NCBI GenBank assembly: GCA_002269645.1
Contig: NIVC01001075.1
Location: forward strand, 124,001 to 188,000
DNA from: Macrostomum lignano
Taxonomy: Eukaryota
DNA: 64,000 nucleotides
Direction of reading: 5' to 3'
Below are positions 2,606-56,019 of this stretch, piece after piece. A model generated the notes under the pieces. It saw only the letters and a program-made list of their open reading frames with translations. It was not told the DNA's origin and did no database searches. Made by a program: the position numbers and the translations under genes. Numbering within the stretch: position 1 is the stretch's first letter; every line of letters begins with the position of its first letter.

Positions 2606-2636
2606 CTGAGAACGAATAATAGAAAGTCTTGGTGGA

Positions 2637-6537: not shown

Positions 6538-6736
6538 CAGTGGTTCTCAATCTATGGGTCGCGACCCCCAGTGGGGTTGCGTGACCATTTTCTGGGGGTC
6601 GCAGCACGAAGAAATGTGTGAGTTGTCATACATAATAATGCATTACATGTATATTAATTTTAAAAGGGGTCGCGAACATTAAAAATGATGCAAGTGAATA
6701 AATTGGGGTCGCCTGAAAAAAGGTTGAGAACCGCTG
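6538..6736. mobile_element. hAT-type MITE (199 bp)
   Basis: TIR CAGTGGTTCTCAA...TTGAGAACCGCTG; perfect 8-bp TSD CTTTAATC at 6530-6537 and 6737-6744. Confidence 0.9.
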
Positions 6737-20274: not shown

Positions 20275-20734
20275 GCCTGACTTCAACTAGAACCCTTCAT
20301 ATGCAATGTATGTACATTGTGCAGATGGGAGCTTACTTAGTACAAAAGCGCTTGAGGGGTTTTGGTTTTGGGGTGTGCCGAGAGTTTCATCGATTTTTCT
20401 AACCCCCACCATACCCTCTCTATTGTTAACCAAACCGAACGCCGCCGCCTGGGGATGGGTGGCCGAGGGGTCTGATCCCCCACTGACTAATTCTCCACTA
20501 TGCCGAATGCAGTCCAGTAGCCAGTTCAGATGGGACCGTGAGGGATCATTGTGTTGTGACTCAGTGACTCCCACATAAACCCGAACACTTCTGTTCTGAA
20601 ATAGTGGGCCAGAATGAGGTTGGGCCGCTTCACAGGACAGGAAATTCACATCCTAAACAAAACATATCTGCAAAATATGCCAAAATCTAATCTGAAGTTT
20701 TTGGATTCAGCCTCAGTCTGACCTACTAGATCTA

Positions 20735-21358
20735 ATCTGGCGCTTATTCAATCCAATCTGGAGCTTGTTAGATCCAATCTGGCGCTTATTAGATCCAATG
20801 TGGCGCTTATTAGATCCAATGTGGCGCTTATTAGATCCAATGTGGCGCTTATTAGATCCAATCTGGCGCTTATTAGATCAAATGCGGCGCTGTTTAGATC
20901 CAATCTGGCGCTTATGAGATCCAATCTGGATCTGGCGTCAGTTAGATCAAATCTGGCGCTTATTAGATCCAATCTGGCGCTTATTAGATCCAATGTGGCG
21001 CTTATTAGATCCAATGTGGCGCTTATTAGATCCAATCTGGCGCTTATTAGATCCAATGTGGCGCTTATTAGATCCAATCTGGCGCTTATGAGATCCAATC
21101 TGGATCTGGCGTCAGTTAGATCAAATCTGGCGCTTATTAGATCCAATCTGGCGCTTATTAGATCCAATCTGGCGCTTATTAGATCCAATGTGGCGCTTAT
21201 TAGATCCAATGTGGCGCTTATTAGATCCAATGTGGCGCTTATTAGATCCAATCTGGCGCTTATGAGATCCAATCTGGCGATTATTAGATCCAATTTGGCG
21301 CTTATTAGATCCAATTTGGCGCTTATTAGATCCAATCTGGCACTTATTACATCCAATC
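20735..21358. repeat. 21-bp minisatellite
   Basis: ggcgcttattagatccaat(c/g)t, about 28 copies. Confidence 0.95.
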
Positions 21359-23278
21359 ATGAGAGATAATTTAGAGAGGTTGATCAAGCTTGATCACGAA
21401 TGGCCAACTGTACTAGTTCGAATGACTATTTTATGAAAGCCACATAAATTGCATGAAAAAATTACGCATCCAATTTCGTTATCGGATTTTATAATTTAAA
21501 ATCACTATTGTTACTTACAGTAGAGTAGCGTGATTGCACTACTGCGACTTTTTGGTGAAACTGTGTGGCTCCAGATTACAAAGGTAGCTTAGTTTTAATA
21601 TCTGACTAAGCTAAAGTCAGATATCTGACTTTAATATCTGACTTTCAGTTAGTTGGATTGTAGTGGAAAGGGGGTGGCATGGGAGGCAGTTTTGGGTTTC
21701 ATGTGGTTACTGTGGGATCGCATAAGGTAAATTTCTGATAAAATTTATACATTGAGAGAAAGAATTAGGAGAATTTGGGATAGCATTAGGAGAATTTATA
21801 GGGGCATTTATTGATATATTGATAGCTTTATTGATAAAGCTTTGAAAGCTTTGACATCTCTGCCAAGTGTCCACCTTCTGTAAGTCGCATTGTTCTCAAA
21901 CAATCAAAATCTTCTATTCCTTTCCTTCGATACTCGACGTGCTCACAGCAGGATTTCGTGACTCGTCGGACAATATCCACATCATCATCATATGATGACC
22001 GAGACGTACCTGAGCGATAGGAGCTCGGCCATCGGAGCGTACGTGCTGCAGCATATACTGTATGGGACAGTCCATCTGTTCGTTTAATCCCACATCCTAT
22101 GACTGGCTTCAATATGTCGCGGGGAACGCGGCCTATTTCGGGAAAATGTTTACCCATTCTCGCCCTCTCTTGCCCACTCGCTCGTTCATCGCAAAATCCA
22201 AGATGATTTTGCAATCGAATCGGGAATTCATTCCCTGAGCTGAAGCTCTCCATGGCTTGATTCTGTGGAGGAGACAGAAGTCCCTGCGAGAGAGCTGTTC
22301 AGGGCCGCACTCAAGGACGTAACTGATCTCGTGTTTTGTGGAAAATTATTTGAAGGCTCACGAATACATTTTGATCTAAGATATTATAGACGAATTCCTG
22401 TGGAAAATTTGTCAATTGGCATTTGTTATTTGTCACCTGGATACAAAAAATACTCAAAAGATTACTTTGAAATTTTATGTCGCATTTCATGTAACAATTT
22501 ATGCCCAATGTTTTAATACAGCATCATTTACACCAGTTAATTTTAGGCAACGGATCCGGAGTTTAATGAATTCGTTGTGGAAGACAATCAATCAGTGTAC
22601 GAGCTCGTTTGTCAGGGTGCCCGCAGCCCTCCTGAAGTTATTAAATTATCACTGTACTAAACCCTCCACCTCCATCTGGCTTTTTATGCCTTACTCTTCC
22701 TCCACTTTTACCCTATACCACTCTGTATACGTTTCCGCCATTCTCTGTGCCCCTAATTCAGGCATACGACTTTAATATTTTTAATGCACTAAATACCATC
22801 TAAAATCCGCATAAAAAGTCGTGCACTTTTAACGACTGAACTGCCGAAAACCAGCATAATCGGCGCACAAAATCCCTGACTCTCAGATGCGAGCATCCAC
22901 AGCGCCCATCAATTTTTATGAAATAATTAAACAATGTCAGAGTAAACTCTCTGCCTTAAGGATTAACTTAGGGATTAGGAGAGGCAGAATTTAGCCAGGA
23001 TTTTCTATATTAGATGGCTCAGCTTCCTTGACGCTCGCATACGAGTATGATTTTATTTACGACAAACTCCAGAGAAGATTACTTTTGGGCTGTAAAAAAC
23101 AAAAACCTTAATCAAGCGACTTGGCGAGCGTCTGGCATGGATTAATATGACTTACTGCTGCCTCCCTGCCTCACTTCCTGAGAGCAGGAGCTGCCTGCAC
23201 TTCCTCACTTCCTTGCAACCCCTGATTTCTCACTTCGAGTCAAGATTCCATCACTATCACGAAAAAGGATAAACCATG

Positions 23279-23832
23279 CAGTGGCGTATAAAAACATAAG
23301 ACAGGTGCGCCCAACAAGAGACAGGGGCGCCCACCAAGAGACAGGGGCGTCCACCAAGAGATAGGGGCGCCCACCAAGAGACAGGGGCGTCCACCAAGAG
23401 ATAGGGGCGCCCACCAAGAGACAGGGGGCGCTCACCAAGAGGTAGGGGCGCCCACCAAGAGACAGGGGCGCCCACCAAGAGACAGGGGCGCCCACCAAGA
23501 GACAGGGGCTAACCTTGACAGGGGCGCCCACCAAGAGGCAGGGGCGCCCACCAAGAGACAGGGGCGCCCACCAAGAGACAGGAGCGCCCACCAAGAGACA
23601 GGGGCGCCCACCAAGAGACAGGGGCTAACCTTGACAGGGGCACCCACCAAGAGGCAGGGACGCCCACCAAGAGACAGGGGCGCCCACCAAGAGACAGGGG
23701 CTAACCTTGACAGGGGCGCTCACCAAGAGACTGGGGCGCTTACCAAGAGGCGGGGGCGCCCAACAAGAGACCAAATATTGCCGCCCCTTACGGCTTCGGC
23801 CCCCCTCTTGTTAAAATTCACGTGTACGCCAC
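23279..23832. repeat. 21-bp minisatellite, possibly inside a MITE
   Basis: ggggcgcccaccaagagacag units; bounded by CAGTGGCGTA...TACGCCACT; no TSD found. Confidence 0.75.
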
Positions 23833-24069: not shown

Positions 24070-24540
24070 TAAATAAATATCCATCCGCCCAACTAGTGAC
24101 TATGGCCCTCTCGGGTCATGGCTGTTTTCCAGGCATCGTCACCTCCAAGGGAAATTCCGTAGCGAGGAATGACCATTCTGCCTCTCCGATGTTGAGAATG
24201 TGGAGCACTTCATCTGTGAATGCCCCGCCTTTACTCAGGACAGGCTCACCTACCTCGGCCCAAACCCGGACCTCTCCGACGTTTTCAGGCCCAGAATCTC
24301 TACCAGCTCGTCCACTATCTCCTGGACTCTCCGGAAGGGGACCGCGCTGCGGACGCCGGCACCACCGGATCTCACAGCGCGACACTGCAGCACCAGCTGC
24401 CCGAGGTCGCCAGGCGTTAGCGGAATGGACGGCAACGCTTCCCCGTGGTATCCGGATGCCCGGAACCCCTGCAGCTGAGTCAAAGTAAGTCAAACTTTCG
24501 TCCCAGCATCCGGCTTCTTACTTTTAGTCACTACAGTATG
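24070..24540 (+). pseudogene. 3' remnant of a non-LTR retrotransposon (zinc-knuckle region)
   Basis: ALSGHGCF...(frameshift)...ENVEHFICECPAF..DRLTYLG resembles the C-terminal CCHC knuckle of I/R1/LOA-type LINE ORF2. Confidence 0.7.
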
Positions 24541-29450: not shown

Positions 29451-29462
29451 ACAGTATAGTAC

Positions 29463-29830
29463 CATCGGCGCCTCCGTGGCCTTCCCGGTCGGGCAACCGC
29501 AGGCCCTCCTGGTCGAAGATATGATCGTGCTCTCTGGGGTCCACTTCCACGGCGTAGTCGTCGTCCATGCTGATGGAGGAAGCCAAGTCAGCCTCGGCTG
29601 CAGACTTCCAGCCGAAGGCCGCGCCGCAGCGTTTTCCCTGGCTCTGCCGCTTCTGCTGCTCTCCAGTTGTCTGCGATGCGTCGGACTGTTCCGAGACTTC
29701 AGACGTTGCTGACTCGGATCCATCCGATTGATGGCTTTCCTCCATGTGAAACAGCTGCTGACTCTCATCCGCTGATGCTGCTGCTGCCGCCTCGTCTTCC
29801 ATTGTTTCGCTCATTTTTATTGTCTACTTG
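29463..29830 (-). CDS. ank: Ankyrin putative post-giant exon (acidic)
   Basis: ORF MSETMEDEAAAA...DDDYAVEVDPREHDHIF; donor GAT G|gtacta, phase 1; acceptor and phase versus the giant exon unresolved. Confidence 0.55.
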
Positions 29831-30315: not shown

Positions 30316-33300
30316 CAGCCTCCGCTGACTCTGCCGTCTGCGCCGTCGTGCCTGCAGTCGAGTTCGCAACGTCTAAACTATCTGTGGACGCTTCCATAGC
30401 CGACTGTTCTCGAACAACACGGACGCCCTCGCTGGGCATGGAATAGGCCAGGGCCCAGCCACTGCCCGATGCTTCTTCGTTGCGCAATCCCTCGATGCTG
30501 TCAACACTAGCTACCATCATCTGGGCGGCGTCGGCTGAAGACAGGGAGTCGGCCTCGCTTGGTGCAAGCAGCGAGGATGTCATGCTGGCTCCCATAGCAG
30601 CCCCAGGCTGCTGCTGCTGTGGCGCTGCCAGCACAGACGGCTGACGCACGGAAGACAAGTCGTCATCGTCGTCCTCCTCCTCACTTTCATTTTCTTCCGT
30701 CTGCTGTTTCTCCCCGACCGGTTCTCTTTCGCGTTTCAATTCTTCCTCTGGAGCGGCTTCGTGACCGCTCAAACTGTCCGCATCGATGCGCTCCTCTTGG
30801 GACGAGCCGTGCACCAGAATCTCTTGTATGCGCTGGTAGCTATCGCCTGTCACGTCTGCCGCAGCTGCTGATGCGGTCGCAGAATTTGCAGCCTCATCTT
30901 CCGGAGACATCTCCCCGACTGTGGGCAGCTGACCAGCTTCCAGTGCCTCGGCAATCTTCGATGCTTCACTGAAGAGCTCCTCATCTACGGCCGACTTTTC
31001 AAGCTGCTCGAACTCATCTAACGAGGACGATTTTGAGTCCGCGGCAAGCCGCCCTTCGCTGTCCTTCTCACCTTCTTCCGCTTCCTCCAGAGGACTCTCG
31101 TCCAGAGGTGTCTGGCGCCAAAAATCACCTGGTGAGCCTGTGGTCGTCGCAGCTGCAGCCTCGCACTCGCGTTCGAGTCTTTCAAATTCCACCAGTGACG
31201 AGCTGACGGATCGGCCCCCGCCGGAGGCAGCCGCTTCACCACTGGACGAAGACTTTTTCAGTGAGCCCGTGCTGCTGACCTGCTGAGCGATCTCCTGTTC
31301 TAATCGCTCAAACTCAGACAGTGACGATGGAATAGAAGAGGACGCTGAACGGCTGTCAACTGAGTGCGCCTGCCCGCAGCTAGGGCTCCCACTGACGCCT
31401 GTCGCTGCGCGTGGAACCACCTGCTGCCGCTTGGCGAGCCGCACTGGGTCAGAGGATTGACCTGGCGCAGTCGTTAATCCTGCAGTCGCTGGCGAACCTG
31501 CGGACGCAGCACTTGGCGAGGACACCAGCTCGTAGTCCTCCAACGAATCGCGAGATGCCGATAACTCCGACAGCAATTGATCCTGCGCTGTTGTTGCATC
31601 CGAGCTGCATGACTCAGTCATGAGCTCAGGAAATCTGTCCTGCTGTTGCTGGTGATGCCGCAGCACCACTGTTGACTGGCTTGATAGGCTCGACGCTTCA
31701 GATATCTCAACAGACATTTCCTCTTCGATCTCGAAACCGATGATTTTCGGAGCAGTTCCAGTCGGACGAGGAATCTGCGAAGTCCGAACTGACTGTTGGA
31801 CTGTTGACTTTTGAGAAGCCGCGGTAACTGTCCCCGTTGATGCAGATGGCTGATCTTGGTTCTGATCTTGTTGCTGCTCTGGTGAACTCTCTGGAGTCTC
31901 TTTCAGCTCAATGATCGGCGAAAGGACGCTCTCGTCAATAACCACCGGCTCCTGATCCGGCTTCTCTACTTCCGAATCTTCTTCTTCAACTTCTCCTCCT
32001 GCGAGCAGATCACCTCCGAGCTCCATGAGGTGACGTTCAGCGAGCATCTCAGCGGCCAGAGCTCTCTGCTCAAGCTCCGGTGTATCCAGTGGCATCGACT
32101 CTACTTCGGGCTGTACTGCTGATCCCGACAATTCGAGAGCATCGTATGCACTTGCCAGAGCTGACATCACCAGCTGTGCTGCTACAGACTCTACTTCTGA
32201 TTCGGCCACCTCAGCGCCGTCCTCACCAGCGGGCTCCAGTGTTGTCGGCACAGTTATCTCTTCGAAGGATTCACTGGTGTCATTATCTGTTTTGTTTTCC
32301 TCTCGCGCGGGCAGTGACGCCAGCTGAACTGTCGTAGCTCTCAACGCTCCTATTGCCGGCCCGAGAGCCTCTGGGGTATCAAGCGGCTCGGCTGTCTCGT
32401 CAACATAGTCTTCGCCATCACCACCTTCGCCTGGGAATTCAGCCTCGTCGCACTCGGAGTTTTGAACGGTGTCCGGCCCGGCTAGGGTGGAGGCAGCCTC
32501 ACTTGCCAGCGACATCGAGATATCTGTGGCATCTTCGTCTCTTCCCGCTGGCTGCCGTGCCTGCTCCGTATCGCTGTCACACGTATCGGCGCCCGCCTCC
32601 GCAGCGCTAACCAGAATGAAGCCGCTATCGTCTTGGCAGGCAGGGCTACCGAAGTGTTCCGTGGTAGCGGAGGTCTCCATTCCTGCGCCTTCACTTCCTG
32701 TGCCGGCGGCACCGCCTCCCCCGGTTACGCTTATTCCCGAGCTAGGCATTTCGCTAGACCTGGATGCATCCTGGCTGAACGAGGACGTATTGAGAGGTAA
32801 TTCGCTCGCCGCCGCTGACTCCATCATTTCGGCTGCCTCAGCCTCCATTTCAAACTGATCCTCTTCCTCCTTGATTGGAGAGCGGTCGTCAGGACTAAGA
32901 CTAGCCTTGTCATTCCCCTTGTCCTCTTCTGCGATCTTTGATGTTTTTTCGTCCTCCTCGTCAGCTTCCAGTGACTGCGAAGTAGTAGCAGAAGCGGTTG
33001 CCATCTGCACTTTCGCATCTGGTGGGAGGGAGCGGTGGATGACTGAGTCAAATGACTCTGGCGTTGGCGACGGAGGCGCAGAACCAGGAGATGCAGGCGA
33101 TGCGGCGATGTTGGCTGCTGCAGCCGCAGCAGCTGGGAGTTGCGGCGACGCCTGTGGCTGCATCGACTGCTGCGTCTCTGTCGGTGCAGCCTCCTCAGAC
33201 TTAGCCAGTGGGAATGCCTCGATGCCATGGTAGACTCGAGTTTGCGGCTGCGAAACAAGCATAGACTCCTCCGATGCAGGCAGCTGGTCCTTGTTCCAAA

Positions 33301-36300
33301 CAATCCAATCGGCTGCCTCGTCGTCCTTTCCAGCAATGTCGTCTCTCGTAGCATCGTCTGGTTTTGGAACAGTGCTGGGCGCTTTTAGCTCCTCTGGTCT
33401 AATTCCAGAGCTTACACTGCCAGCACCGACAGTTTCATTTTCCTTGCTAGGCAAGGTTTTCGGTAATGTATCTGCTTCCTTGTACTCCAAGCTTTTCTCC
33501 TCTTCTAGAACTTCTTCAAGCGCAGCCTCGGGTAGCTCAGCAGACTCCCCAAAAAAGTCCATATCCTTCGCACTGGCGTCAGGGCCCAGTGATTTACCCG
33601 ATTGCTCTTCAAACGTTGGCATTTCAAACCTCTCAGGCTCCAAAGGCTGTTCGGCTTCTTGAGGTTCGCAGGTCGGTTTCTCAGCTTCTTCAGGCTCCTT
33701 GTGAGTCGGTTTTTCCACCTCTTCAGGGTCCTTGTAGATCGGCTTCTCTGCCTCTTCAGGCTCCTTGTGAGTCGGTTTTTTCACCTCTTCAGGGTCCTTG
33801 TAGGTCGGCTTCTCTGCCTCTTCAGGCTCCTTTTGAGTTGGCTCCTCGACCACCTCGAGTTCTTCATAGGCTGGCTTTTCAGTTTTTTCAAGTTTATTGT
33901 AAGTTAACTCATCGACCTCTTCAGGCTCTTCGTAGGTCAGCTTGTCGATCTCTTCAGGCTCCTTCAGAGTTGGCTTTTCCTCCTCAGGTTCATTTTTAGT
34001 CGGTTTCTCGACCTTCTCAGACTTTTCATGCTGATGTTCGACTACTGACTCAAAACTCTCTTTTTGAATAGAAACCGCTTCCTGATTGGTCAGCCAGTGC
34101 TTACCCTGAAGCGCGCGCATTTCCTGAGCTTCCTCCACTCGACTATTAGATTCGCTGCTATCCCACGAACGAAAAGATACGCTGTGAACTGAACCAGCTA
34201 CTTGTCGAAAGCTATTTTCCTGGTGAATTTCAGTTTTATTCAACGTGCTCACACTCTGAACTGTGCTTTCCTCAAAATGAAGGGACTGTGAATGAGTCTC
34301 CGAAAAATATTGTTGCTGCTCTGAAACTCCAGCTGTTCTCGAAGTCACCTCGGTCAGCAATGAGGTCGAAGTGTCTCCGATAGCTGAGTCCTCAGGAACC
34401 CGGAGCTGCACAGCTAGCATTTCAAATTCATCCAAAACTTCTGACTTAGATTTCAAAGCAGTCCCGAAATTCGAATTGATTTCTGAATGGGCTTTCTCGG
34501 TTGAATAACCCGCCGTGTCATGAATTGGCTCATCAAGAGGATTCTCTTCAGTGTGAACAAGCTCATCCCGAAACTTAAAAACTTCTTCTTCGGCACGAAT
34601 TGATTCTTCTTGACTGTCAAGAACCTTCTCTTCAGTGTTGAGTGCCTTATCGTGAATTGTCTCTTCAGTATGAGCTGGCTCATCGTGCACTTCTGTAACC
34701 TTCTTATCAGTGTGTGCCGGCTCTACATGCACTTCAGGAACCTTCTCTTCGGCATGAGCAGGCTCTTCATGCACTTCAGGAACCTTCTCTTCGGCATGTA
34801 CAGGCTCTTCATGCACTTCAGGAATCTTCTCTTCGGCATGAGCTGGCTCTTTATGCACTTCAGGAGTTTTCTCTTCGGCATGAGCAGGCTCTTCATGCAC
34901 TTCAGGAGTTTTCTCTTCGGCATGAGCTGGCTCTTCATGCGAAACTTCAGTAACCTTCTCTTCGGCATGAGCTGGCTCTTCATGCGAAACTTCAGTAACC
35001 TTCTCTTCGGGGTGAGCTGGCTCTTCGTGCAACACTTCAGTAACCTCTTCGGCGTGAGCTGGCTCTTTCTGCGAAACTTCAGGAATCTTCTGTTCGGCGT
35101 GAGCAGGCTCTTCATGCACTTCAGGAATATTCTCTTCGGCGTGAGCAGGCTCTTTATGCACTTCAGGAACCTCTTCTTCAGCATAAGCAGGCTCTTTATG
35201 CACTTCAGTAACCTTCTCTTCGGCGTGAGCTGGCTCTTCGTGCAACACTTCAGTAACCTTCTCTTCGGCGTGAGCTGACTCTTTGTGCAACACTTCAGTA
35301 ACCTTCTCTTCGGCGTGAGCTGGCTCTTCATGCGAAACTTCAGTAACCTTCTCTTCGGGGTGAGCTGGCTCTTTGTGCAACACTTCAGTAACCTTCTCTT
35401 CGGCGTGAGCTGGCTCTTCATGCGAAACTTCAGTAACCTTCTCTTCGGCGTGAGCAGGCTCTTCATGCGAAACTTCAGTAACCTTCTCTTCGGCGTGAGC
35501 TGGCTCTTCATGCGAAACTTCAGTAACCTTCTCTTCGGCGTGAGCTGGCTCTTCGTGCAACACTTCAGTAACCTTCTCTTCGGCGTGAGCTGGCACTTCA
35601 TGCGAAACTTCAGTAACCTTCTCTTCGGCGTGAGCTGGCTCTTCATGCGAAACTTCAGTAACCTTCTCTTCGGGGTGAGCTGGCTCTTTGTGCAACACTT
35701 CAGGAATCTTCTCTTCGGCATGAGCTGGCTCTTCCTGCACTTCAGGAACCTTCTCTTCGGCGTGAGCTGGCTCTTCATGCGAAACTTCAGGAATCTTCTG
35801 TTCGGCATGAGCAGGCTCTTCATGCACTTCAGGAACCTTCTCTTCAGCGTGAGCTGGCTCTTCGTGCAACAATTCAGTAACCTTCTCTTCGGCGTGAGCT
35901 GACTCTTTCTGCGAAACTTCAGGAATCTTCTGTTCGGCATGAGCAGGCTCTTTATGCACTTCAGGAACCTTCTTTTCGGCGTGAGCAGGCTCTTCATGCA
36001 CTTCAGGAACCTTCTCTTCGGCATGAGCAGGCTCTTCATGCACTTCAGGAACCTTCTCTTCGGCGTAAGCTGGCTCTTCGTGCAACACTTCAGTAACCTT
36101 CTCTTCGGCATGAGCTGGCTCTTCATGCACTTCAGGAACCTTCTTTTCGGCGTGAGCAGGCTCTTCATGTACTTCAGGAATCTTCTCTTCGGCATGAGCT
36201 GGCTCTTCATGCACTTCAGGAACCTTCTCTTCGGCATGAGCAGGCTCTTCATGCACTTCAGGAACCTTCTCTTCGGCATGAGCAGGCTCTTCATGCACTT

Positions 36301-39300
36301 CAGGAACCTTCTCTTCGGCATGAGCTGGCTCTTCATGCGAAACTTCAGTAACCTTCTCTTCGGGGTGAGCTGGCTCTTTGTGCAACACTTCAGTAACCTT
36401 CTCTTCGGCGTGAGCTGGCTCTTCATGCGAAACTTCAGTAACCTTCTCTTCGGGGTGAGCTGGCTCTTCGTGCAACACTTCAGTAACCTTCTCTTCGGCG
36501 TGAGCTGGCTCTTCGTGCAACACTTCAGTAACCTTCTCTTCGGCGTGAGCTGGCTCTTCGTGCAACACTTCAGTAACCTTCTCTTCGGCGTGAGCTGGCT
36601 CTTCATGCGAAACTTCAGTAACCTTCTCTTCGGCGTGAGCTGGCACTTCATGCGAAACTTCAGTAACCTTCTCTTCGGCGTGAGCTGACTCTTCCTGCAC
36701 TTCAAGAGTTTTCTCTTCGGCGTGAGCAGGCTCTTCATGCGAAACTTCAGTAACCTTCTCTTCGGCGTGAGCAGGCTCTTCATGCGAAACTTCAGTAACC
36801 TTCTCTTCGGCGTGAGCTGGCTCTTCATGCGAAACTTCAGTAACCTTCTCTTCGGGGTGAGCTGGCTCTTTGTGCAACACTTCAGTAACCTTCTCTTCGG
36901 CGTGAGCTGGCTCTTCATGCGAAACTTCAGTAACCTTCTCTTCGGCGTGAGCAGGCTCTTCATGCGAAACTTCAGTAACCTTCTCTTCGGCGTGAGCTGG
37001 CTCTTCATGCGAAACTTCAGTAACCTTCTCTTCGGGGTGAGCTGGCTCTTTGTGCAACACTTCAGTAACCTTCTCTTCGGCGTGAGCTGGCTCTTCATGC
37101 GAAACTTCAGTAACCTTCTCTTCGGGGTGAGCTGGCTCTTTGTGCAACACTTCAGTAACCTTCTCTTCGGCGTGAGCTGGCACTTCATGCGAAACTTCAG
37201 TAACCTTCTCTTCGGGGTGAGCTGGCTCTTCGTGCAACACTACAGTAACCTTCTCTTCGGCGTGAGCTGGCACTTCATGCGAAACTTCAGTAACCTTCTC
37301 TTCGGGGTGAGCTGGCTCTTCGTGCAACACTTCAGTAACCTTCTCTTCGGCGTGAGCTGGCACTTCATGCGAAACTTCAGTAACCTTCTCTTCGGCGTGA
37401 GCTGGCTCTTCATGCGAAACTTCAGTAACCTTCTCTTCGGGGTGAGCTGGCTCTTTGTGCAACACTTCAGGAATCTTCTCTTCGGCATGAGCTGGCTCTT
37501 CCTGCACTTCAGGAACCTTCTCTTCGGCGTGAGCTGGCTCTTCATGCGAAACTTCAGGAATCTTCTGTTCGGCATGAGCAGGCTCTTCATGCACTTCAGG
37601 AACCTTCTCTTCAGCGTGAGCTGGCTCTTCGTGCAACAATTCAGTAACCTTCTCTTCGGCGTGAGCTGACTCTTTCTGCGAAACTTCAGGAATCTTCTGT
37701 TCGGCGTGAGCAGGCTCTTCATGCACTTCAGGAACCTTCTGTTCGGCATGAGCAGGCTCTTCATGCACTTCAGGAACCTTCTCTTCGGCATGAGCTGGCT
37801 CTTCCTGCACTTCAGGAACCTTCTCTTCGGCGTAAGCTGGCTCTTCGTGCACTTCAGGAACCTTCTCTTCGGCATGAGCTGGCTCTTCATGCACTTCAGG
37901 AACCTTCTCTTCGGCATGAGCTGGCTCTTTATGCACTTCAAGAGTTTTCTCTTCGGCGTGAGCTGGCTCTTCATGCGAAACTTCAGTAACCTTCTCTTCG
38001 GCGTGAGCTGACTCTTTGTGCAACACTTCAGTAACCTTCTCTTCAGCGTGAGCTGGCTCTTCGTGCAACACTTCAGTAACCTTCTCTTCGGCGTGAGCTG
38101 GCTCTTCATGAGAAACTTCAGTAACCTTCTCTTCGGCGTGAGCTGGCTCTTCATGAGAAACTTCAGTAACCTTCTCTTCGGCGTGAGCTGGCTCTTCATG
38201 CGAAACTTCAGTAACCTTCTCTTCGGCATGAGCTGGCTCTTCATGCGAAACTTCAGTAATCTTCTCTTCGGCGTGAGCTTGCTCTTCGTGCAACACTTCA
38301 GTAACCTTCTCTTCGGCGTGAGCTGGCTCTTCATGCAAAACTTCAGTAATCTTCTCTTCGGCATGAGCTGGCTCTTCGTGCAACACTTCAGTAACCTTCT
38401 CTTCGGCGTGAGCTGGCTCTTCATGCGAAACTTCAGTAACCTTATCTTCGGCGTGAGCTGGCTCTTCGTGCAACACTTCAGGAACCTTCTCTTCGGCGTG
38501 AGCTGGCTCTTCATGCGAAACTTCAGGAATCTTCTGTTCGGCATGAGCAGGCTCTTCATGCACTTCAGGAACCTTCTCTTCAGCGTGAGCTGGCTCTTCG
38601 TGCAACATTTCAGTAACCTTCTCTTCGGCGTGAGCTGGCTCTTCCTGCAACACTTCAGTAACCTTCTCTTCGGCATGAGCAGGCTCTTCATACAAAAATT
38701 CAGTAATATTCTCTTCGGCGTGAGCTGGCTCTTCGTGCAACACTTCAGTAACCTTCTCTTCGGCGTGAGCTGGCTCTTCATGCGAAACTTCAGTAACCTT
38801 CTCTTCGGCGTGAGCTGGCTCTTCGTGCACGCCAGGAACCATTTTAGGAAGATCTGGCTCTACGTGCATTTCTAGAATCTTCTCTTTAGCTGACTCCTCG
38901 TGAAGTTCAGGAGCTTTGTCAGCTTGTAGTGCTTTGTCCTGAAGCTTCTCCATATTTTCTTCTGCATAATCTGGATGAGTTTGGCTAAGCTCTGTGCTTC
39001 TCTTTCTTAGCTGAACTGCAAGAACATTTATTTCCTCTTCCCTTTCGATGTGACGTGCATTGGCTCAGATACAGAATCACTTTGGACCGTCGCTTTCACG
39101 TGTTGAATCCTCTCATCAAGAACCGTCTTCTGATCCAGCCGATCTTGTTTAGTCGGAACAGTCGGTTCGGATGCTTTTTCCTTTTCATGAGTAGTCTGCT
39201 CATCTTGAGCAGGAGTCTGCACCTCCTCCGTCTTAGCCTTCAGCTCTATCGACTCCTCCTCGGTGATTTGCGTCATGCGCTCAGCCAGAGGCGATGCTGC

Positions 39301-40064
39301 CACTGCACCTGCAGCAGCGCTGTTGCCCCAGCTCCCGGAAACTTCTTGTAGGCGTCAACGGGACTCTGCACCGGGCTGTCCAGCTTCTCCTCGATGCGAG
39401 AGTACGCGTACTCAGCGGAGACTAGTCGGGAAAATGCCGCGGCGCCAGCTTGTTGGGCACTCGTCAAATCGTCTTTAGCCGGGCTGACCAGCTCTTCTGG
39501 TCGAATTCCGCCCTCATGGAACAGGCCGCGCCGATCGGCAGCTCCTCGGGCCTGAAGAAGGCGGGCTTTCCAGCAGATGGCGTTTCCTCATCGTCTTCCT
39601 CCTCGCCCTCCGTGGCCGAAGCCGACGTGTAGGATGCCGATGAGGCGCTTTCCAAAAAGACGTCCTCCGAAGCGTCTGCTACCTCTGCATCGGCTGCCTG
39701 TTGGAAACTGATGACTGCGGACGGCGTCTCCTCTACTGGCGTCGGCGCCTCGGAGCCGGTATCAGCGCCAGATATGGAGCGCGTTAGCTCGGAGATCGAT
39801 TTCTCCTCCACCTGGGGCGTCGCATCAGGCGCGTTTAGCGCGTCATCGATGCTGACATGCCGCATCTCGCTGCGAAGGCTCTCTTCGAACTCCATACTGC
39901 GCAGCATAAGCGAGTTCAACGAATGCCGCCGCGTAGCATCGCCTGGTGATTCTGCAGGCGCCGGCACGACGTCGGCTGCCCTGTCGGAAGCTTCCTCGAT
40001 CGCGGACGCTACGGAAGTTGCGTCGGTGGTTGAGCCTGTCGTCTCTGGGCGTCTCGTTGTGTCT
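30316..40064 (-). CDS. ank: Ankyrin giant exon (~9.75 kb, ~3250 aa)
   Basis: 2896-aa ORF 30263-38953, extended upstream through three apparent 1-nt deletions to acceptor ctacag| at 40065; donor GCT G|gtgcgg at 30315. Confidence 0.8.
34650..38830 (-). repeat. Coding tandem repeat, 42/45 bp (EEPAHAEEKVPEVH / EEPAHAEEKVTEVSH)
   Basis: Roughly 90-95 in-frame units visible in DNA and translation. Confidence 0.95.
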
Positions 40065-42016: not shown

Positions 42017-42244
42017 CCCCAGCAGCTGTCTCTGGAGGCGTGTGCACCTGGGCTTGCACTTGGCTGATAGACTTTGGTACATCAACAACTTCTTCTGGCG
42101 TTCCAGCCTCCGGCGCCATCGACTGATCGGGACGAGCGTCCAGCCTGGCCAGCAGCTCCTCCACCGCGTTGAGTCCCTCCTTTGCTCGCTTCTCCGGCGA
42201 GCCGGGTGCTTTGCTCGGCTCCACTACAGCCTCATCTACAGACT
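42017..42244 (-). CDS. ank: Ankyrin 228-nt symmetric exon (DQSMAPEAGTPEEVVDVPK)
   Basis: ctccag|...GGG G|gttcgt, phase 1-1. Confidence 0.7.
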
Positions 42245-42500
42245 CTGGAGTTGAGGTGTTGGGGATGATGCGTCAAGTCCGCTAGTTATCACTGGGAACT
42301 ATTTTGATTGTCATATACAGCCATCCTAGTTGACGTAATCTCTATAAAGCAAAACGGTACAGCAATCCGACGTCGATGACAGATATGTACTCTTACACTA
42401 TCTGTCAATGCAATGTAGAAGCACATATTTTTCATCGTCCCCAGGTTACTGCACGAGAAACTAAAAACGATTCGCATCTACCATCCCCCAAAGCACTAAC

Positions 42501-43110
42501 CTTTGTCTTCAAACTCTGAGGTCGTAGCCAACGGCTTCGGCTCAGGTGTCTGTTCCTCCAACGTGCGAACCAACTCCAGATAGGCCTCTGTCTTGGCGCG
42601 CCGTGCGGCTGCCTCCTCGTCGGCGGTGTACGATCGAGCTACGCCGTGCGTCGGATCCACGGCCGCAACCAGTTCGGGCTCATCTGCGGACTCCGCTGGC
42701 GCAGCAACATCCGATGCTGCCCGCGGCGCCGGCCTTGCAGCCTTTGAAATCGGAGGTCCGCTGTAGTCCGGCAGGGCCAATTCCAGAGTGCAGATTGCCG
42801 CAGTCGTCGCGGAGGTCGTCTGCGGCTCGGCCAGGAAGGCGACGCGTCCAGCGGCCGGCTGGTCGGCGTCGCGGGGTCGAGCGCCGCAGGTGAGGCGGTT
42901 TTCTCGGAAAGCACGGACGGTGAAGAACGGCGGCTGCTGTAGCTGGTGCTGCTGCTGGTGATCGAACAGACCGCGAGGCTCGGCCGCCACATGGAAGGCG
43001 GTCAGATTGTCTAAACCTTCTATCCACAACGGCCGACCGTCGAGGATTTCAACTTCGCGCGATTCCGCCTTCCGCTCGAAGCCCTGCGCCGTCTCCAGAG
43101 TTTTGTCCGC
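42501..43110 (-). CDS. ank: Ankyrin UPA domain exon
   Basis: ADKTLETAQGF..SREVEILDGRP..FRENRL..ICTLELALP matches ankyrin UPA; phase 0 to 1. Confidence 0.9.
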
Positions 43111-43389
43111 CTGTTGATTGTTGCGAGTCGCGGCCGTGCATCGATTTTGGTTTGCACTTGAAAGCTAAGCACATTTGGCTAGGTTAGATACTAGATAGAA
43201 AGGATATCCTTCAACGATTACATGTAGAATTATGTCAGGGCCGCTGTACACCCCTTGGCTCCGTAGCTAAATCTCCTTCACAAATTCTTTTTCAAGAAAA
43301 CGAAACTACTAATTTTCACCTTAGTATCAATTGCTAAATCATGTTTGAATCCCTTAGGTTTTATCCCTTCTAATAATCTCTCCCCTTAC

Positions 43390-43857
43390 CCGGTCATCCG
43401 TGATGCAGAGGCAGCGAAGTCGAGCCTCATCCGGGTGAGTCCTCTTGGCGTAGACCACAAAGCGGCCCATGTAGGGCACGGCAGCGGCCTCCCTGTACAG
43501 CTTGCCGGCCATCTCGGCGGCTTCGGCCGGGTTCTGACAGTCGACTAGCCAAAATCTGGCGCTCACCGTTGTAGTGAAAGACACGCTGTCCTTGACGTGG
43601 GACAGCGCTGTAGAACCGGTGATGTCTTCCCAGGTGGCCGGCTGAGCGCCACCAGTGATGCTGCATAGCAGGCGAAGCGTCTGCGACGCGCCCAACCCTG
43701 ACGCCGACGCGGCCGACGGCAGCGGCAGGGTGAGAGTGATCGGCTTGTGAAATTTACGCCGACGCGGCTCGATGGTCACCACCGGGGAGGCGGCGATTCG
43801 ACGCTGGCCAGCGCCGCCGAACAGGCGGGCAGCCGCCTCCGACGGGATCGGGAATAC
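43390..43857 (-). CDS. ank: Ankyrin ZU5-B/UPA exon
   Basis: SPVVTIEPRRRKFHKPIT..WEDITG..SFTTTVSARFWL..VPYMGRFVV. Confidence 0.97.
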
Positions 43858-43877
43858 CTGTAAACGGTTTTGAATAT

Positions 43878-44095
43878 CCGTTGTACTTTTAGGGACTCTT
43901 CTTTGTACTATTAAGGACTCTCTGTTGTACTTTTAAGGACTCTGTTGTACTTTAAGGGACTCTCTGTTGTACTTTTAAGGACTTTCTTTTGTACTTTAGA
44001 GACTCCCTGTTGTACTATTAGGGACTCTCTATTGTACTTTTAATGACCTCACTCTTGTACTTTTAGGGACTCTCTGTTGTACTTTTAGTGACTCT
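43878..44095. repeat. ~21-bp degenerate minisatellite
   Basis: gtacttttagggactctctgtt units. Confidence 0.85.
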
Positions 44096-44258
44096 CTAAA
44101 GCACACACGACAAGCCAGAAGCACTCATTTAAAGACTAAGTATAGGTCAAGTCAGTGCAAGCGCACTCTGGAAAAGGATTAAAAACGCAAGTTGACAGAC
44201 TCCATGGTCCAAAAAAGCTTGACAGAAAAGTGGCACCAATTCAGACGCCAGTTCAAAC

Positions 44259-44562
44259 CTGAACTCCAACTCGAATCTTCTTGGTCAAGGCGCCGTCCGG
44301 GAACACAGACTGGACGCGTCCGTTGGCCAGGCTGGCGCCAATAACGCCGCCCTCCGGACCGATCAGGGCCGCCTCCTGTCGGAGCCGCGTCACCAAGGCG
44401 AAGTACTGCGGCAGGCTGGCAGTCAGGATGCGTACGATGCGCCTCTGGCGCAGCTCTTCGTTGCTCTCCAACGGGCTGCCAAAGAAGCCGCCAATGACGT
44501 CTAGCACAGCCTGCTCGGAGGCCTCAAGAGCGTGCTCTTTCCAGGTTTCACCTGTGTCCGAT
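44259..44562 (-). CDS. ank: Ankyrin ZU5-A/ZU5-B exon
   Basis: SDTGETWKEH..PQYFALVTR..IGPEGG..FPDGALTKKIRVGVQ. Confidence 0.97.
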
Positions 44563-44706
44563 CTGACAGGTACGGGATGTGATGTCTGCACTGTTATGTC
44601 TATGGCCTAACTTTGACAGAGCGAGAGCGAGCACAGTACCCGCAAAGCAGCCGACTATTTAAAATTCATCTTTCTTACTTGAATTTCGTTGGAGATTCGC
44701 TCTCAC

Positions 44707-45000
44707 CTGTAGACCACAATCTCCCTCTCAGAGTTCCTCAGCGCGGCCATGTGCGGCACCTCGAGCAGCACGGGACTGGCGAAGCTCCGGCAGCTGCAGC
44801 CGAACTCCAGGATCCGGCAGGCGAGGCCTTCGCCGTCGTTCAGCTGCGGCGGCCGGCTCACCCGGCCGGGGCGGAGCAGGCGGCACGTGACTCGGGTTGG
44901 CCCGGTGGCCGCGTTCGGCGGCACCACGATGCGCAGGCCCGGACAGCGGGCGCCGGTCATGGCGCCGCCTCGGGCGTCAACCAGGAATGAGACCAGGAAC
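44707..45000 (-). CDS. ank: Ankyrin ZU5-A (spectrin-binding) exon
   Basis: FLVSFLVDARGGAM..PTRVTCRL..GEGLACRILE; phase 2-2. Confidence 0.97.
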
Positions 45001-46589
45001 CTGGAGGCGTTGGGGACGCCATGGTACATTGGAATTGGATTTGACACAATTGGACAATAGGACACAAGCCTCGAGGTTTATATTCATCAACGTTCATTGT
45101 CATTCAGTTTGGACGTGTTTTCAATAAACATTAGTTAGACAAAGCTTTTGGCACTGCTGACACCTGACCCTGAGCACGCACACTTCTCATGTACATTGAG
45201 ACATGTTGATTTATATACCGGTAGTAAAATTGCTCAGATGAGTCCGAAAAATGTTGTCATAAAGGAAATGAGTGATGGGAGAGGATGGCCTGTGCCTATG
45301 GCCCACTGACGAAGGCGAACAACCAGAAATGTTTCGTGGTTTTACCGCAAATATTGATCCATAACAAATGCGAAAACTACGAGCACTAAGGACCAGCAAG
45401 TGACCACTTGGCATTAGGAAATGGGATGACGAGGCAAGAGAGTGATGAAGGCAGTGCTCATCAGCTTCGGCTGCTGTGAAGTGGCAGTTAAGAGAACTCA
45501 TTGTCAACCCAACCCCACAAAAAGTTTCCTGGCCGCCGGCTATGCACGCTCGTAGGCTACGCCTGAAGATTTTAACTTTCTGCCTGTCAATCAGCAATAT
45601 TGTGAGATAAATATTTGGTAGCAATGTCCATTTAAAGTACAAATAATTAGTGATATATACTATGTCAGATCGTAGTTTGAAAAAATATCTTACAATTTCC
45701 CAGTCGCAGAGGCTTCGCCATCGGTCGGTGGCTGGCACTTCACTGCAGTGACTGTCATCCCGAGCAGTTTCCTAGAAATACAAGGCCACCCTCCCGGCCA
45801 CGGTTTCTCGGGTTCTGTCAAGTAATACTTGTGATTCTAGAGCGTAGTTACTGGGTCCCGTTCGATTCGATCAAAGATCTGATTGACATTGTCCCAAAAA
45901 GGTCTCTGGTTGAAATACGTCTTGTGCAGTCCGTTCCTCTCCTCCCCAACTCAATCGCTACTCTTCCCCAATCTATGGGAGAGCGGCATTGGCTGAGAAG
46001 CGAGGAATTCAGGCGAGGGGGGGGGAGTTATGAGCGCATCCCAGCTTTTCCCGTCCCTGCCTACTGTAACTCTAAAGAAGTATTTTGGTCTGCAGCGGAC
46101 GTGGATCGGCTCGTGCGTACACTCGAGATTCAGGACACGCGGCCTTAAAGCAGAGGACAGTCCCGTATTCTCCTGCACTTGGCGCAGAAATCCAGGCCGG
46201 AGTATGAGGGAGGAGACGGGTTGTTGCCATGCGCTGTTCAACCTTCCCTTGTTTCGCCTCTGTATATGCTATTGCGTGCGACACATTACATTGACTCGTC
46301 TAGACTCATCTCTCAATTGAGGCCTTCTGTTTGTTCTCCAGCCTCCTCTCTTCCTCATCATGGCATTATACGTACGATAAAGTTTCTAAAATTAGAATAC
46401 TATATATTCCTATATACGTCTACGGGTACTAGCAAGTGCTCAAGTTTGATTGACACGTTAACTGCTTGGTTTGTACTTTAAAGTTGTGTCTGGCCGCCTC
46501 TTAGTCAGTAAGAATTGAGTGTAGTTGAAACATAGAAAAATTTAACATGGAGGCAACTTCATTTCCTGGAAAATAACGGAAACAGGAGG

Positions 46590-46825
46590 GGGAGAGAAGG
46601 GAGAGGGTGAGAAGGGAGAGGGTAAGAAGGGAGAGGGTGAGAAGGGAGAGGGTGAGAAGGGAGAGGGTGAGAAGGGAGAGGTGAGAAGGGAGAGGGTGAG
46701 AAGGGAGAGGGTGAGAAGGGAGAGGGTGAGAAGGGAGAGGGTGAGAAGGGAGAGAGTGAGAAGGGAGACGGTGAGAAGGGAGAGGGTGAGAAGGGAGAGG
46801 GTGAGAAGGGAGAGGGTGAGAAGGA
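46590..46825. repeat. 15-bp purine-rich minisatellite
   Basis: gagaagggagagggt tandem. Confidence 0.9.
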
Positions 46826-47329
46826 AGAGGGCGAGAGTGAGAGAGGAGAGAGATAGGAAGAGATAGGAGAGGCAGGGTGAACCAGGGACAGGAAGGCAAG
46901 GAAGATCTCTCTGACTCAGCCAGCAGACCCGCATGCATTTTATTCTCAAACATTAGACTGCCTTCTCGCTGGGTCCGCAGTCAGACCACACTTTCGCCTT
47001 CTCTCTAAGTCTGTCTGACTACTCTGGATTTGCATTTTTTGTTATGAGTCACGCGTGCTGAGAAAAATCATTCGCCAGAGGCCAACTTAAAACTAAATTG
47101 AGTCATTTGGCTTTTCCTGTTCCACACTTTTAATTTGCTGAAACTGCTCTTGGCGAAGTTAAAAAATGGGAGTAGCTCTCAGAAAATTCCAGCTTTGCAC
47201 GCATTCCAAACGAGCTCAATAAAACAAATTCTCCAGTTTGGAATATGAATCATATTTTATCTATTTTAAATTAAGTTTGAGTTAGGGCTAGGGTTCCGCG
47301 GTCACTTCTTGTCAGTCAGGTTGTTGGCC

Positions 47330-48350
47330 TGTCTCAATCACACTCCCTGTTTCAATCTCATTTCCTATCTCAATCTCACTCCCTGTTTCAATCTCACTCG
47401 CTATCTCAATCTCACTCCCTATCTCAATCTCAAACTCATTCCCTGTCTCAATCTCAATCTCTATATCAATCTCACTCCTATCTCAATCTCACTCCCTATC
47501 TCAATCTCACTCCCTATCTCAATCTCACTCCCTGTTTCAATCTCACTCGCTATCTCAATCTCACTCCCTATCTCAATCTCACTCGCTATCTCAATCTCAC
47601 TCGCTATCTCAATCTCACTCCCTATCTCAATCTCACTCCCTATCTCAATCTCACTCCCTATCTCAATCTCACTCCCTGTTTCAATCTCACTCGCTATCTC
47701 AATCTCACTCCCTATCTCAATCTCAAACTCATTCCCTGTCTCAATCTCAATCTCTATATCAATCTCACTCCCTATCTCAATCTCACTCGCTATCTCAATC
47801 TCAATCTCCATCTCACTCCCTGTTTCAATCTCACTGCCTGTTTCCATCTCATTTCCTATCTCAATCTCACTCCCTGTTTCAATCTCACTCGCTATCTCAA
47901 TCTCACTCGCTATCTCAATCTCAATCTCCATCTCATTCCCTGTCTCAATCTCAATCTCAATCTCAATCTCACTCCCTATCTCAATCTCACTCCCTATCTC
48001 AATCTCACTCCCTATCTCAAGCTCACTCATTATCTCAATCTCACGTCCTATCTAATCTCACTCCCTGTTTCCATCTCATTTCCTATCTCAATCTCACTCG
48101 CTATCTCAATCTCAATCTCCATCTCATTCCCTGTCTCAATCTCACTCCCTGTCTCAATCTCACTCCCTATCTCAATCTCACTCCCTATCTCAATCTCACT
48201 CCCTATCTCAATCTCACTCCCTATCTCAATCTCACTCCCTATCTCAATCTCACTCCCTATCTCAAGCTCACTCATTATCTCAATCTCACGTCCTATCTAA
48301 TCTCACTCCCTGTTTCCATCTCATTTCCTATCTAATCTCACTCTCTATCT
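47330..48350. repeat. Hexamer-derived (TCTCAA/TCTCAC) tandem repeat, ~18-bp period
   Basis: tctcaatctcactccctа-type units throughout. Confidence 0.9.
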
Positions 48351-53134: not shown

Positions 53135-53359
53135 CTGGAAGAGTTCGGCGAGAGGAGGAGTAAAACATGATGGATTCCTGGCCAGACTCAGTACGACAAT
53201 GTCCGCACAGTTTGCTTAGCATACAGATGGAGCCTTATCAGCTAAGTGGATCTCGCAGCCTAGGCTCAGACTGCTCAATAAGTTCAGACAGTTGTTTTTT
53301 CCACCTCTGACCAGCTCGGGCTAAAAGTGCATTCTGTCTGAGCTGGCTCTTAATGTCTC

Positions 53360-54715: not shown

Positions 54716-55036
54716 CCTGTTCTGCCCCCACAGCGCACCTCCCAGACTCGTGAAACACAAACAGGTCATAAATTTTCGAGAATGGAGTTTTCTCTCATTC
54801 AAATCTTTCCGCTTCCGCGACAAGGAAACTCAAACCCGCTCCGACGCAGCTGACAGATGAGACTCATATCCGTGCGCGCGTTTTATTTGACTTGTTTAAA
54901 TCAGCAAATTGATGAAGAAGTTAATTAAATGTAGCAATTCCTTTCGCGAAGTCCCAACACGTTTCTAAGAATCTGTCTGGCTGGCATATAAAAATAGAAT
55001 GCACTTTTAGAACGCGGGATTTTAGCCTAAACGATA

Positions 55037-55500
55037 GGCGCTGAAATAAGTGTCAGCTAAGGCGCTGAAATAAGTGTCAGCTAAGGCGCTGAAATAAGTG
55101 TCAGCTAAGGCGCTGAAATAAGTGTCAGCTAAGGCGCTGAAATAAGTGTCAGCTAAGGCGCTGAAATAAGTGTCAGCTAAGGCGCTAAAATAAGTGTCAG
55201 CTAAGGCGCTGAAATAAGTGTCAACTAAGGCGCTGAAATAAGTGTCAGCTAAGGCGCTGAAATAAGTGTCAGCTAAGGCGCTGAAATAAGTGTCAGCTAA
55301 GGCGCTGAAATAAGTGTCAGCTAAGGCGCTGAAATAAGTGTCAGCTAAGGCGCTGAAATAAGTGTCAGCTAAGGCGCTGAAATAAGTGTCAGCTAAGGCG
55401 CTGAAATAAGTGTCAGCTAAGGCGCTGAAATAAGTGTCAGCTAAGGCGCTGAAATAAGTGTCAGCTAAGGCGCTGAAATAAGGGTCAGCTAAGGCGCTAA
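55037..55500. repeat. 24-bp minisatellite
   Basis: ggcgctgaaataagtgtcagctaa, about 19 near-identical copies. Confidence 0.95.
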
Positions 55501-55534
55501 ACTACAAAACCCACAAAAAGCATGCAAACCTTAC

Positions 55535-55733
55535 CGGCCTCCTCCTCAGAGTCGGACATGTTTTGCTCGGCCAAAGTGTCCGGCCGGCACATCTCCACAG
55601 TCTCCTCAATGGTGGTCAATTCTTCCTCCTCCCAGGTGCGCACCTGGCTGCTGCCACCGCCGCTGCTACGGAGCGCCTCGAAGACTTCGCGGTGGCCGCG
55701 GCAGCGGGCGAGCTGAGCCGGCGTGTGGCCGCG
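55535..55733 (-). CDS. ank: Ankyrin last ANK repeat and start of linker
   Basis: RGHTPAQLARCRGH..NMSDSEEEAG (compare vertebrate LDVSDEEG); phase 0 to 1. Confidence 0.9.
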
Positions 55734-56019
55734 CTGAGGTGCGAGCGGATTTTTGTCTTCTTGAGCAAAATTTAGTTGACATATACTCATAGGTCTACTT
55801 ATTAGTAGGCTACTATCAGTAGTATGGTGCGTGTGTGAAAGAATATGTGGATTCAGCACATTCTAATTTTTAAGTAATTCGTTTCGCAATTTATTTTATT
55901 TCGAAAGTTTTTATACGAGCGTATAAGGTGCTTTGATTCCTGTCTGTCTCTCCCCACTCCGTCTCTCCCCTCTCCGTCTCTCCCCTCTCCCCTCTCCATC
56001 TCTACCCTCTCCGTCTCTA

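Follow-up and report, generated by a model that had tools for sequence, protein, structure and literature searches.

In a 64,000-nucleotide stretch of the Macrostomum lignano genome (assembly GCA_002269645.1, contig NIVC01001075.1, positions 124,001 to 188,000 of the forward strand; hereafter the window), the region that runs on the minus strand from position 40064 to 30316 is probably a giant exon of about 9.75 kb within an ankyrin gene. Giant ankyrins organise axon initial segments and the axonal cytoskeleton in vertebrates, flies and nematodes, and the Macrostomum locus, not described before, adds a new member to this known class of neuronal scaffold genes and does not define a class of its own. 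The feature by which such genes are recognised is an open reading frame (ORF) or exon that exceeds 3 kb and follows the UPA exons of an ankyrin locus, and a survey of 23 loci reported long exons of 8,103 ± 4,850 bp (Jegla et al. 2016, PMC5135030). Long-exon ankyrins listed there include the vertebrate 480-kDa AnkG and 440-kDa AnkB, Ciona Ank, Drosophila Ank2-L/XL, C. elegans UNC-44 and the ankyrins of Aplysia and Lottia. The survey included no flatworms, and in the top-ranked literature we did not find 'giant ankyrin' paired with a flatworm term. The Macrostomum exon, at 8.8 kb of unbroken frame or 9.75 kb by homology, is well above the 3-kb limit.

The minus strand is the coding strand of the long exon, and on it a single stop-to-stop frame runs uninterrupted from 39064 to 30266 (2,933 codons), of which 2,916 codons (30316..39064) precede a GCTG|gtgcgg splice donor. 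Since repeats may be open by accident, the openness of the tandem array that fills much of this frame is weak coding evidence when taken alone, and the non-repeat tail is decisive. Its 1,436 codons contain no in-frame stop, where base composition predicts 62 (P ~1e-27); the two alternative frames of this strand contain 42 and 107 stops, and those of the opposite strand 41-51. Splice sites are present at both limits of the exon, namely an acceptor (ctacag|A) at 40064 and the GCTG|gtgcgg donor at 30316, and both resemble those of the gene's confirmed introns, which measure about 90 nt or more and use CAG| acceptors and GTGAGA, GTAAGG, GTCAGT or GTGCGC donors. Past the donor at 30316 the frame stays open for another 17 T-rich codons and then meets a stop. 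An Rfam scan of the window returned no RNA family.

The earlier note on this DNA had placed the exon downstream of ZU5-ZU5-UPA, and Pfam matches to ANK, ZU5, ZU5/UPA and UPA upstream on the same strand bear this out. Four segments (59681-58722, 58607-57966, 57551-56862 and 56581-56180) encode about 24 ANK repeats of the membrane-binding domain (Pfam Ank/Ank_2, E 1e-17 to 1e-60) and are collinear with residues 47-800 of the M. lignano protein PAA50710.1, with 52-59% identity by tblastn. They are followed by an exon at 55500..55862 (…WEEEELTTIEETVEM…SDSEEEAG|gtaagg), which ends in a GTAAGG donor and was matched to about residues 790-850 of PAA50710.1 by eye only. The first ZU5 domain and the segment after it occupy two exons at 44256..45077 (Pfam ZU5 at 45077-44706, E 4.5e-23; intron of about 95 nt at 44705-44610), which align by tblastn with ankyrins of Fasciola, Cichlidogyrus and M. 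lignano. The second ZU5 and the start of UPA lie at 43357..43932 (Pfam UPA_2 E 4.6e-12, with a weak ZU5 match; 60-66% identity to flatworm ankyrins), the rest of UPA with a linker at 42499..43164 (Pfam UPA_2 E 3.8e-19; collinear with PAA50710.1 residues 1242-1433) and, ahead of the long exon, a linker exon at 42063..42263 (tblastn to PAA50710.1 residues 1433-1497, E 6e-5), all of them on the minus strand. The distance from the last UPA exon to the start of the long exon is 2.4 kb. Used as a query, the spliced ZU5-ZU5-UPA sequence matched 336 ankyrins at E <= 1e-10, and its best named matches were Fasciola gigantica Ankyrin-2 (552 bits, 55% identity) and a monogenean protein (60%).

The core motif of the linker exon, which ends in DQSMAPEA(G/V)TPEE, recurs on the minus strand at 41922-41848 and 41414-41340. 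Only the copy at 42263-42063 aligns well with PAA50710.1, and the three copies between 42263 and 41340, all of them coding-like, may represent a tandemly duplicated small exon.

The connection between the ankyrin core and the long exon is supported by a paralogue in the same species. PAA50710.1 (BOX15_Mlig013172g1; 2,938 aa, partial, annotated 'hypothetical protein') is encoded at a locus on contig NIVC01003580.1 of GCA_002269645.1 (L003), and its model joins about 24 ANK repeats, ZU5, ZU5 and UPA (Pfam) to a long exon homologous to that of the window. The collinearity extends through the ANK/ZU5/UPA exons, the linker exon at 42263-42063, the three frame segments of 40064-39064 and the tail. 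At L003 the long-exon ORF is unbroken over 1,866 codons and collinear with window 40064->30316; it starts a few residues upstream of the equivalent of 40064 and ends in GCAGCTG|GTCAGC, the counterpart of GAGGCTG|GTGCGG in the window. Because the paralogue ORF is both unbroken and collinear, the limits of the window exon are right by homology, and the conserved donor at the end of the ORF implies that the long exon is internal. The annotation of the M. lignano assembly was built from RNA-seq transcript assemblies (PMC5730564), and the PAA50710.1 model thus provides indirect transcript support for splicing of the homologous long exon to the ankyrin core.

The two M. lignano genes share their architecture, their exon limits, a 15-aa repeat period, units that start with EEP, and a tail with 33-37% identity. 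They differ in the repeat itself, which comprises 15 units of EEPSQQHLRESPVPT in the paralogue and 94 of EEPAHAEEKVTEVSH in the window, the units being identical at 19 of 45 nt. The exon of the paralogue measures 5.6 kb, is unbroken, and is preceded at L003 by two extra long repeat-containing ORFs. These ORFs, of 886 and 1,006 codons (L003 26595-29252 and 30111-33128), are situated after the UPA exons and before the long exon, apparently outside the annotated PAA50710.1, and may be additional alternative long exons.

A HMMER search with the tail of the window exon matched three proteins. The closest, A0A1I8JMR8 (UniProt, M. lignano), shares 94% identity in the HMMER comparison and about 93% over aligned columns; it covers the tail and a downstream segment, and its model is frame-shifted in many stretches relative to the window. 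This match points to M. lignano or a near-identical species as the source, in keeping with the GC content of the window and its many tandem repeats. The UniRef name of this entry, 'ELMO domain-containing protein', was discarded, as no Pfam hit supports it. The second match was PAA48154.1 of M. lignano, whose 90% cluster includes PAA50710.1 (37% identity to the tail), and the third was an ENA protein with 38% identity. A word-indexed search with the same tail came back empty, which is a false negative caused by low-complexity words that saturated the 8,000 candidates. The proposal of a flatworm giant ankyrin thus gains from the ~93-94% tail match within M. lignano and from the paralogue model, in which the core is connected to the long exon.

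The first kilobase of the exon, defined by homology (39065..40064, minus strand), does not follow the single frame of the remainder. It is read in three successive frames, 40064-~39530, ~39530-~39300 and ~39300-~39060. Within 40064-39064 the codon-start coordinate modulo 3 moves from 1 to 2 to 0, returning to 1 for the long ORF, and the hand-offs near 39525-39532, 39285-39339 and 39050-39100 each amount to the loss of one base in the same direction. By tblastn this kilobase matched PAA50710.1 residues 1564-1722 in frame 1 (E 2e-22) and residues 1783-1845 in frame 2 (56% identity, E 5e-17), and its peptides are contiguous in the single ORF at L003. Since the paralogue carries the same peptides unbroken, the four frame segments together form contiguous coding sequence. 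We rejected introns as a bridge across the frame changes: the paralogue has one continuous ORF, no convincing short GT-AG intron spans the first change, and enumeration across the breaks yielded 283 single-intron and 72 multi-intron open paths (up to three introns), none of which stands out. The limits of 40064 and 30316 given in the earlier note therefore hold, on the strength of the splice sites and the collinear, unbroken paralogue ORF, but the single frame of about 3,250 codons that it described is interrupted by three breaks.

These breaks are either consensus errors of PacBio continuous long reads (PacBio-CLR) or genuine lesions that affect one of the copies in a recently duplicated genome. 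Single-base losses are the typical consensus error of PacBio-CLR data. The public M. lignano assemblies are of this type (PMC5730564), and given the perfect 8.8-kb ORF downstream we consider assembly error somewhat more likely than real lesions. Were the lesions real, the window copy would be a decaying duplicate that makes no giant isoform, and a near-identical copy would do the work. Such a scenario draws on the clustering of three breaks within ~500 nt of the exon's first kilobase, with none in the ~4 kb of conserved exons or in the 8.8-kb ORF, and on the recent polyploidy of M. lignano, whose genome holds 180 Mb of duplicated non-repetitive blocks at least 95% identical to each other (PMC5730564). 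A second copy may indeed exist, as A0A1I8JMR8 is just ~93-94% identical to the window over aligned residues, but that model is frame-shifted, and errors of the model could account for some or all of the mismatches. Moreover, 8.8 kb of fully open frame would be unexpected for a dead gene unless the breaks were very recent, and all three are single-base losses in one direction, as in PacBio-CLR data. We consider decay of the window copy unlikely.

The position of the first start codon raises another alternative, in which the long ORF encodes a separate protein, for example from a trans-spliced cistron, that is not part of an ankyrin. The first ATG after the upstream stop is at 38953, the ORF from there measures 2,896 aa, and the frame breaks all lie upstream of it; in M. 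lignano, 38.8% of genes are trans-spliced and ~7% of transcripts derive from polycistronic precursors (PMC5730564). Yet homology to the paralogue continues upstream of this ATG through three frames, in what is a single ORF of an ankyrin transcript model, the ORF ends at a conserved splice donor and not at a natural stop, and an exact look-up of the 2,896-aa product found no record in the searched protein collection. A free-standing protein is accordingly very improbable.

The central part of the exon is a tandem array. Tandem Repeats Finder (TRF) reported a 45-bp array at 34660-38828 with 94.6 copies and 88% match, and TRF, self-comparison and parsing of the protein on an A-H-A-E anchor together delimit 94 in-frame units at 34558..38815 on the minus strand. 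Of these, 64 are 15 aa long (commonest AHAEEKVTEVSHEEP) and 30 are 14 aa long (AHAEEKVPEVHEEP), giving about 1,400 aa in total. Unit lengths always vary by whole codons, i.e. by multiples of 3 nt. The array also has a higher-order periodicity of two units (90 nt) and contains a duplicated block of 846 nt (37853-37007 and 36086-35240, 1,767 nt apart, 97.5% identity), and together these two features are a signature of recent unequal crossing-over. Differences between units fall on codon positions 1, 2 and 3 in the proportions 58/35/76 for the 45-nt units and 28/12/55 for the 42-nt units, and synonymous to non-synonymous codon differences number 67:99 and 40:40, respectively, with a synonymous share above the unconstrained expectation; shared descent of the units inflates all of these counts, which are supportive only. 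The third-position excess argues for selection on the peptide in the array frame.

That the array is a non-coding minisatellite open by chance, as its near-open second frame (2 stops), its opposite-strand ORFs of 200-300 aa and an intronic minisatellite at 53241-54857 that is open in all six frames might suggest, is refuted by the passage of the frame through 1,436 stop-free non-repeat codons, the whole-codon length differences, the third-position bias and the homology of flanks and tail to annotated proteins.

In composition, the array is 31% Glu, with His (12.8%), Val and Ala at ~13% each, 10% Pro and 8% Lys; each unit has one Pro, and the array holds 179 His residues. Because of the His residues, its net charge is calculated to weaken from about -315 at pH 7.4 to about -193 at pH 6.0. 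An AlphaFold2 single-sequence model of ten units had no secondary structure and a mean predicted local distance difference test score (pLDDT) of 51, although a model of this type is weak evidence for disorder. The prediction is consistent with an unfolded polyanionic chain, whose contour length we estimate at up to ~500 nm at ~0.35 nm per residue. A word-indexed search of 5.8 billion protein clusters with the repeat as query gave no match, and none of the consensuses in Table S4 of Jegla et al. (PMC5135030) resembles the unit. With a different unit in the paralogue as well, the earlier description of the repeat as lineage-specific is fair, and judging from the sequences compared the unit appears to be even paralogue-specific.

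Other minisatellites lie in and downstream of the ankyrin gene, at 53241-54857, 47270-48332, 46504-46980, 55025-55501, 60700-61800, 20716-21393, 23208-23810 and 3906-6263. Several of them are open in most or all frames, so that ORF length alone means little in this window; tandem repeats make up 15% of the M. lignano genome (PMC5730564).

From its 5' end, the long exon encodes a linker of ~330 aa, the array, a second linker of ~210 aa, a KEPEE repeat and a tail of ~1,100 aa. The KEPEE block (33670..33877, minus strand) consists of about ten copies of the 11-aa unit EKPTxKEPEEA, with a period of 33/66 bp by TRF and translation, and the tail is acidic and rich in Ser and Ala (S 14%, E 14%, A 14%). 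The contents that had been read from the letters, namely an acidic, His-containing repeat of ~1,400 aa, a KEPEE block and an acidic S/A-rich tail, proved accurate by TRF and translation.

Near the end of the tail lies a conserved C-terminal module of about 200 aa (30785..31387, minus strand) with three SSLxEFExLE motifs (31327-31298, 31201-31172 and 31027-30998), the third of which is followed by D[ED]E[LV]x[ST]EA[SR]K[IV]A..LE.G.LP. It is the best-conserved part of the long exon, with 72% identity between the M. lignano paralogues as against 33-37% in the rest of the tail. Alignment with window 30785-31387 places its counterparts at 39240-39842 in L003 and at 9980-10480 in an ENA contig from an unrelated genome of lower GC (L002; ERZ28675667 ctg1541); identity to the latter is 35%, and 53 columns are invariant over the three loci. 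AlphaFold2 starts an amphipathic helix at each SSLxEFExLE motif (pLDDT 72-89) and leaves the Ser-rich linkers between them disordered. A PDB sequence search with the module gave no match at E <= 10, and among the supplementary sequences of Jegla et al. the SSLxEFExLE motif was found just as an unrelated EFEELE in a Limulus repeat.

The motifs are loosely alike to the Atg8/GABARAP-binding sites of AnkG and AnkB. In vertebrate giant ankyrins these sites combine an LC3-interacting region (LIR), with a Φ-x-x-Ψ core after acidic or Ser residues, and a C-helix, in which +7 is acidic (+6 in STX17) and +8 or +11 is hydrophobic (PMC8727931). Motifs 1 and 2 of the Macrostomum module read F-E-x-L-E-x-E-[I/C], that is, an F-x-x-L core followed by Glu (+6) and Ile or Cys (+7), a spacing that is one residue off, and AlphaFold places the F-x-x-L core itself inside the helix. 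The module could be a partner-docking site.

In L002, which has 38% GC, a called ORF of 10,855 aa (1-9207) precedes the SSLxEFExLE module and contains acidic repeats of ~102 aa (E 26%, V 14%, I 10%). This ORF may represent the giant-ankyrin exon of another flatworm species.

Comparison with known giant ankyrins places the Macrostomum exon within the family pattern in several respects. The long exons surveyed by Jegla et al. carry arrays of 5 to >160 copies with units of 36-228 bp, repeat homology among them is restricted to very close species, and their composition is biased, with Ser+Glu at ~25% and S/E/T/D/K/P above 55% (PMC5135030). The Macrostomum exon shares the >3-kb ORF past UPA, the size range, the Ser/Glu bias (Ser+Glu 31.3%) and an array whose unit lacks homologues beyond close relatives and which, with 94 copies of 42-45 bp, falls within the surveyed ranges; its S/T/E/D/K/P content is 54.0%, marginally below 55%, compared with 29.9% in the ANK/ZU5 exons. 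It differs in that its array is dominated by Glu, Ala, Val, His and Pro, with an unusual 12.8% His, and in that we detected no death domain before or after it, whereas protostome long exons are placed downstream of the death domain, a domain that is hard to find and was not found in Branchiostoma (PMC5135030).

Of the individual systems, Drosophila Ank2-XL is similar in copy number: its 93 units of 76 aa are a postulated molecular spacer according to Stephan et al. 2015 (cited in PMC5135030), and like the 94 units in Macrostomum they form a highly homogeneous, acidic, Pro-containing repeat within a long exon. The fly unit is five times longer than the 14/15-aa unit and has no sequence similarity to it, and its function has been genetically tested, whereas the Macrostomum array is known from sequence. 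The insert of human and mouse 440-kDa ankyrin-B, with 15-16 copies of the 12-aa PPVSPSGKTEKH (Table S4, PMC5135030), likewise places a short unit with Pro, Lys, Glu and His in a giant exon, but it has six times fewer copies, a basic to neutral unit and no sequence homology to the Macrostomum array, and in the vertebrate gene a clear death domain follows the exon. In the flatworm Fasciola gigantica, the 10 kb downstream of the death-domain exons of the ankyrin locus (L001) contain no long ORF, and an orthologous long exon was not obtained there.

Several points weigh against the interpretation as a giant ankyrin exon. In comparison with a canonical ankyrin, about 24 ANK repeats and ZU5-ZU5-UPA are present, but a death domain after UPA was not found. 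In the window, tblastn with ten ankyrin homologues and Pfam searches on ten downstream and linker ORFs detected none, and a hidden Markov model (HMM) built from 69 ankyrin death domains detected none in any frame of the window, including the 30 kb downstream of the exon, or in L003. As a control, the same HMM recovered a split death domain directly after UPA in Fasciola gigantica (L001 53732-54454, E 1.9e-4). A tblastn hint at 24140-24202 of the window ('EVLHILNIGEAEWSFLATEF', E 0.41) had no HMM support and was dropped. The death domain may have been lost from Macrostomum ankyrins or relocated within them, or it may lie beyond the window. Furthermore, the first coding exon of the gene was not found within the window, and the UPA-joined giant isoform is untranslatable from the exact sequence without corrections or unproven introns. 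Splicing and expression of the window copy are presumed from sequence, and the predicted disorder of the array comes from the single-sequence model mentioned above.

Beyond the giant exon, splicing from the 30316 donor to any of the tandem CAG acceptors at 29783, 29780 and 29777 would preserve the frame, and an in-frame splice test identified a candidate next exon at 29459..29783 on the minus strand (…AASADESQQLFHMEESHQSDGSE…GHGGADG|gtac). The corresponding open segment (29452-29823) is acidic and Ser-rich and ends in GATG|gtac at 29459, and the A0A1I8JMR8 model joins the tail to it. The segment also has an ATG of its own at 29814, in an AAAATG context and overlapping an AATAAA at 29821. Since M. 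lignano uses spliced-leader (SL) trans-splicing and polycistronic units, the segment at 29459-29783 may represent either a further exon of the ankyrin gene or a cistron of its own, which could be trans-spliced. Further downstream, a 700-codon frame is open on the minus strand at 10660-12759; parts of it are rich in Cys, Pfam gave no match at E <= 1, and it could belong to a neighbouring gene or be what is left of a transposon.

How the encoded protein might work can be outlined from its parts. The ANK and ZU5-UPA portions would tether it to membrane proteins and spectrin, and the unfolded, strongly negative array would hold the C-terminal docking helices away from the membrane skeleton, as proposed for Ank2-XL; a role of the array as a spacer or bristle is suggested by this analogy and by the structural models, and a neuronal function of the long exon is likewise presumed. 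The array probably grew and was homogenised by unequal crossing-over, and such a process would explain why the unit differs even between paralogues. Taking these elements together, one can imagine that flatworm giant ankyrins share a previously unrecognised, conserved C-terminal docking module, formed by three SSLxEFExLE helices and a DEELxSEAxKIA..LE.G.LP helix, which rather than the repeat would be their functional payload, perhaps an Atg8/GABARAP-type or other helical-peptide site, with the array as a pH- or metal-responsive charged spacer and, in Macrostomum, the death domain lost or moved, a departure from the protostome arrangement published in 2016. We put forward this combined picture tentatively and rate it as possible but rather doubtful.

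For work on this locus, the frame-broken 5' part of the exon in the assembly and the absence of the array from public protein sets mean that gene models need manual curation, and transgenesis is established in M. lignano (PMC5730564). The paralogues, which have kept a 15-aa period and not its sequence, illustrate fast turnover of the array, and the predicted helical module at the C-terminus offers a concrete candidate for the partner-binding part of the exon. Collectively, the locus and its paralogue extend the giant-ankyrin pattern to the Platyhelminthes.

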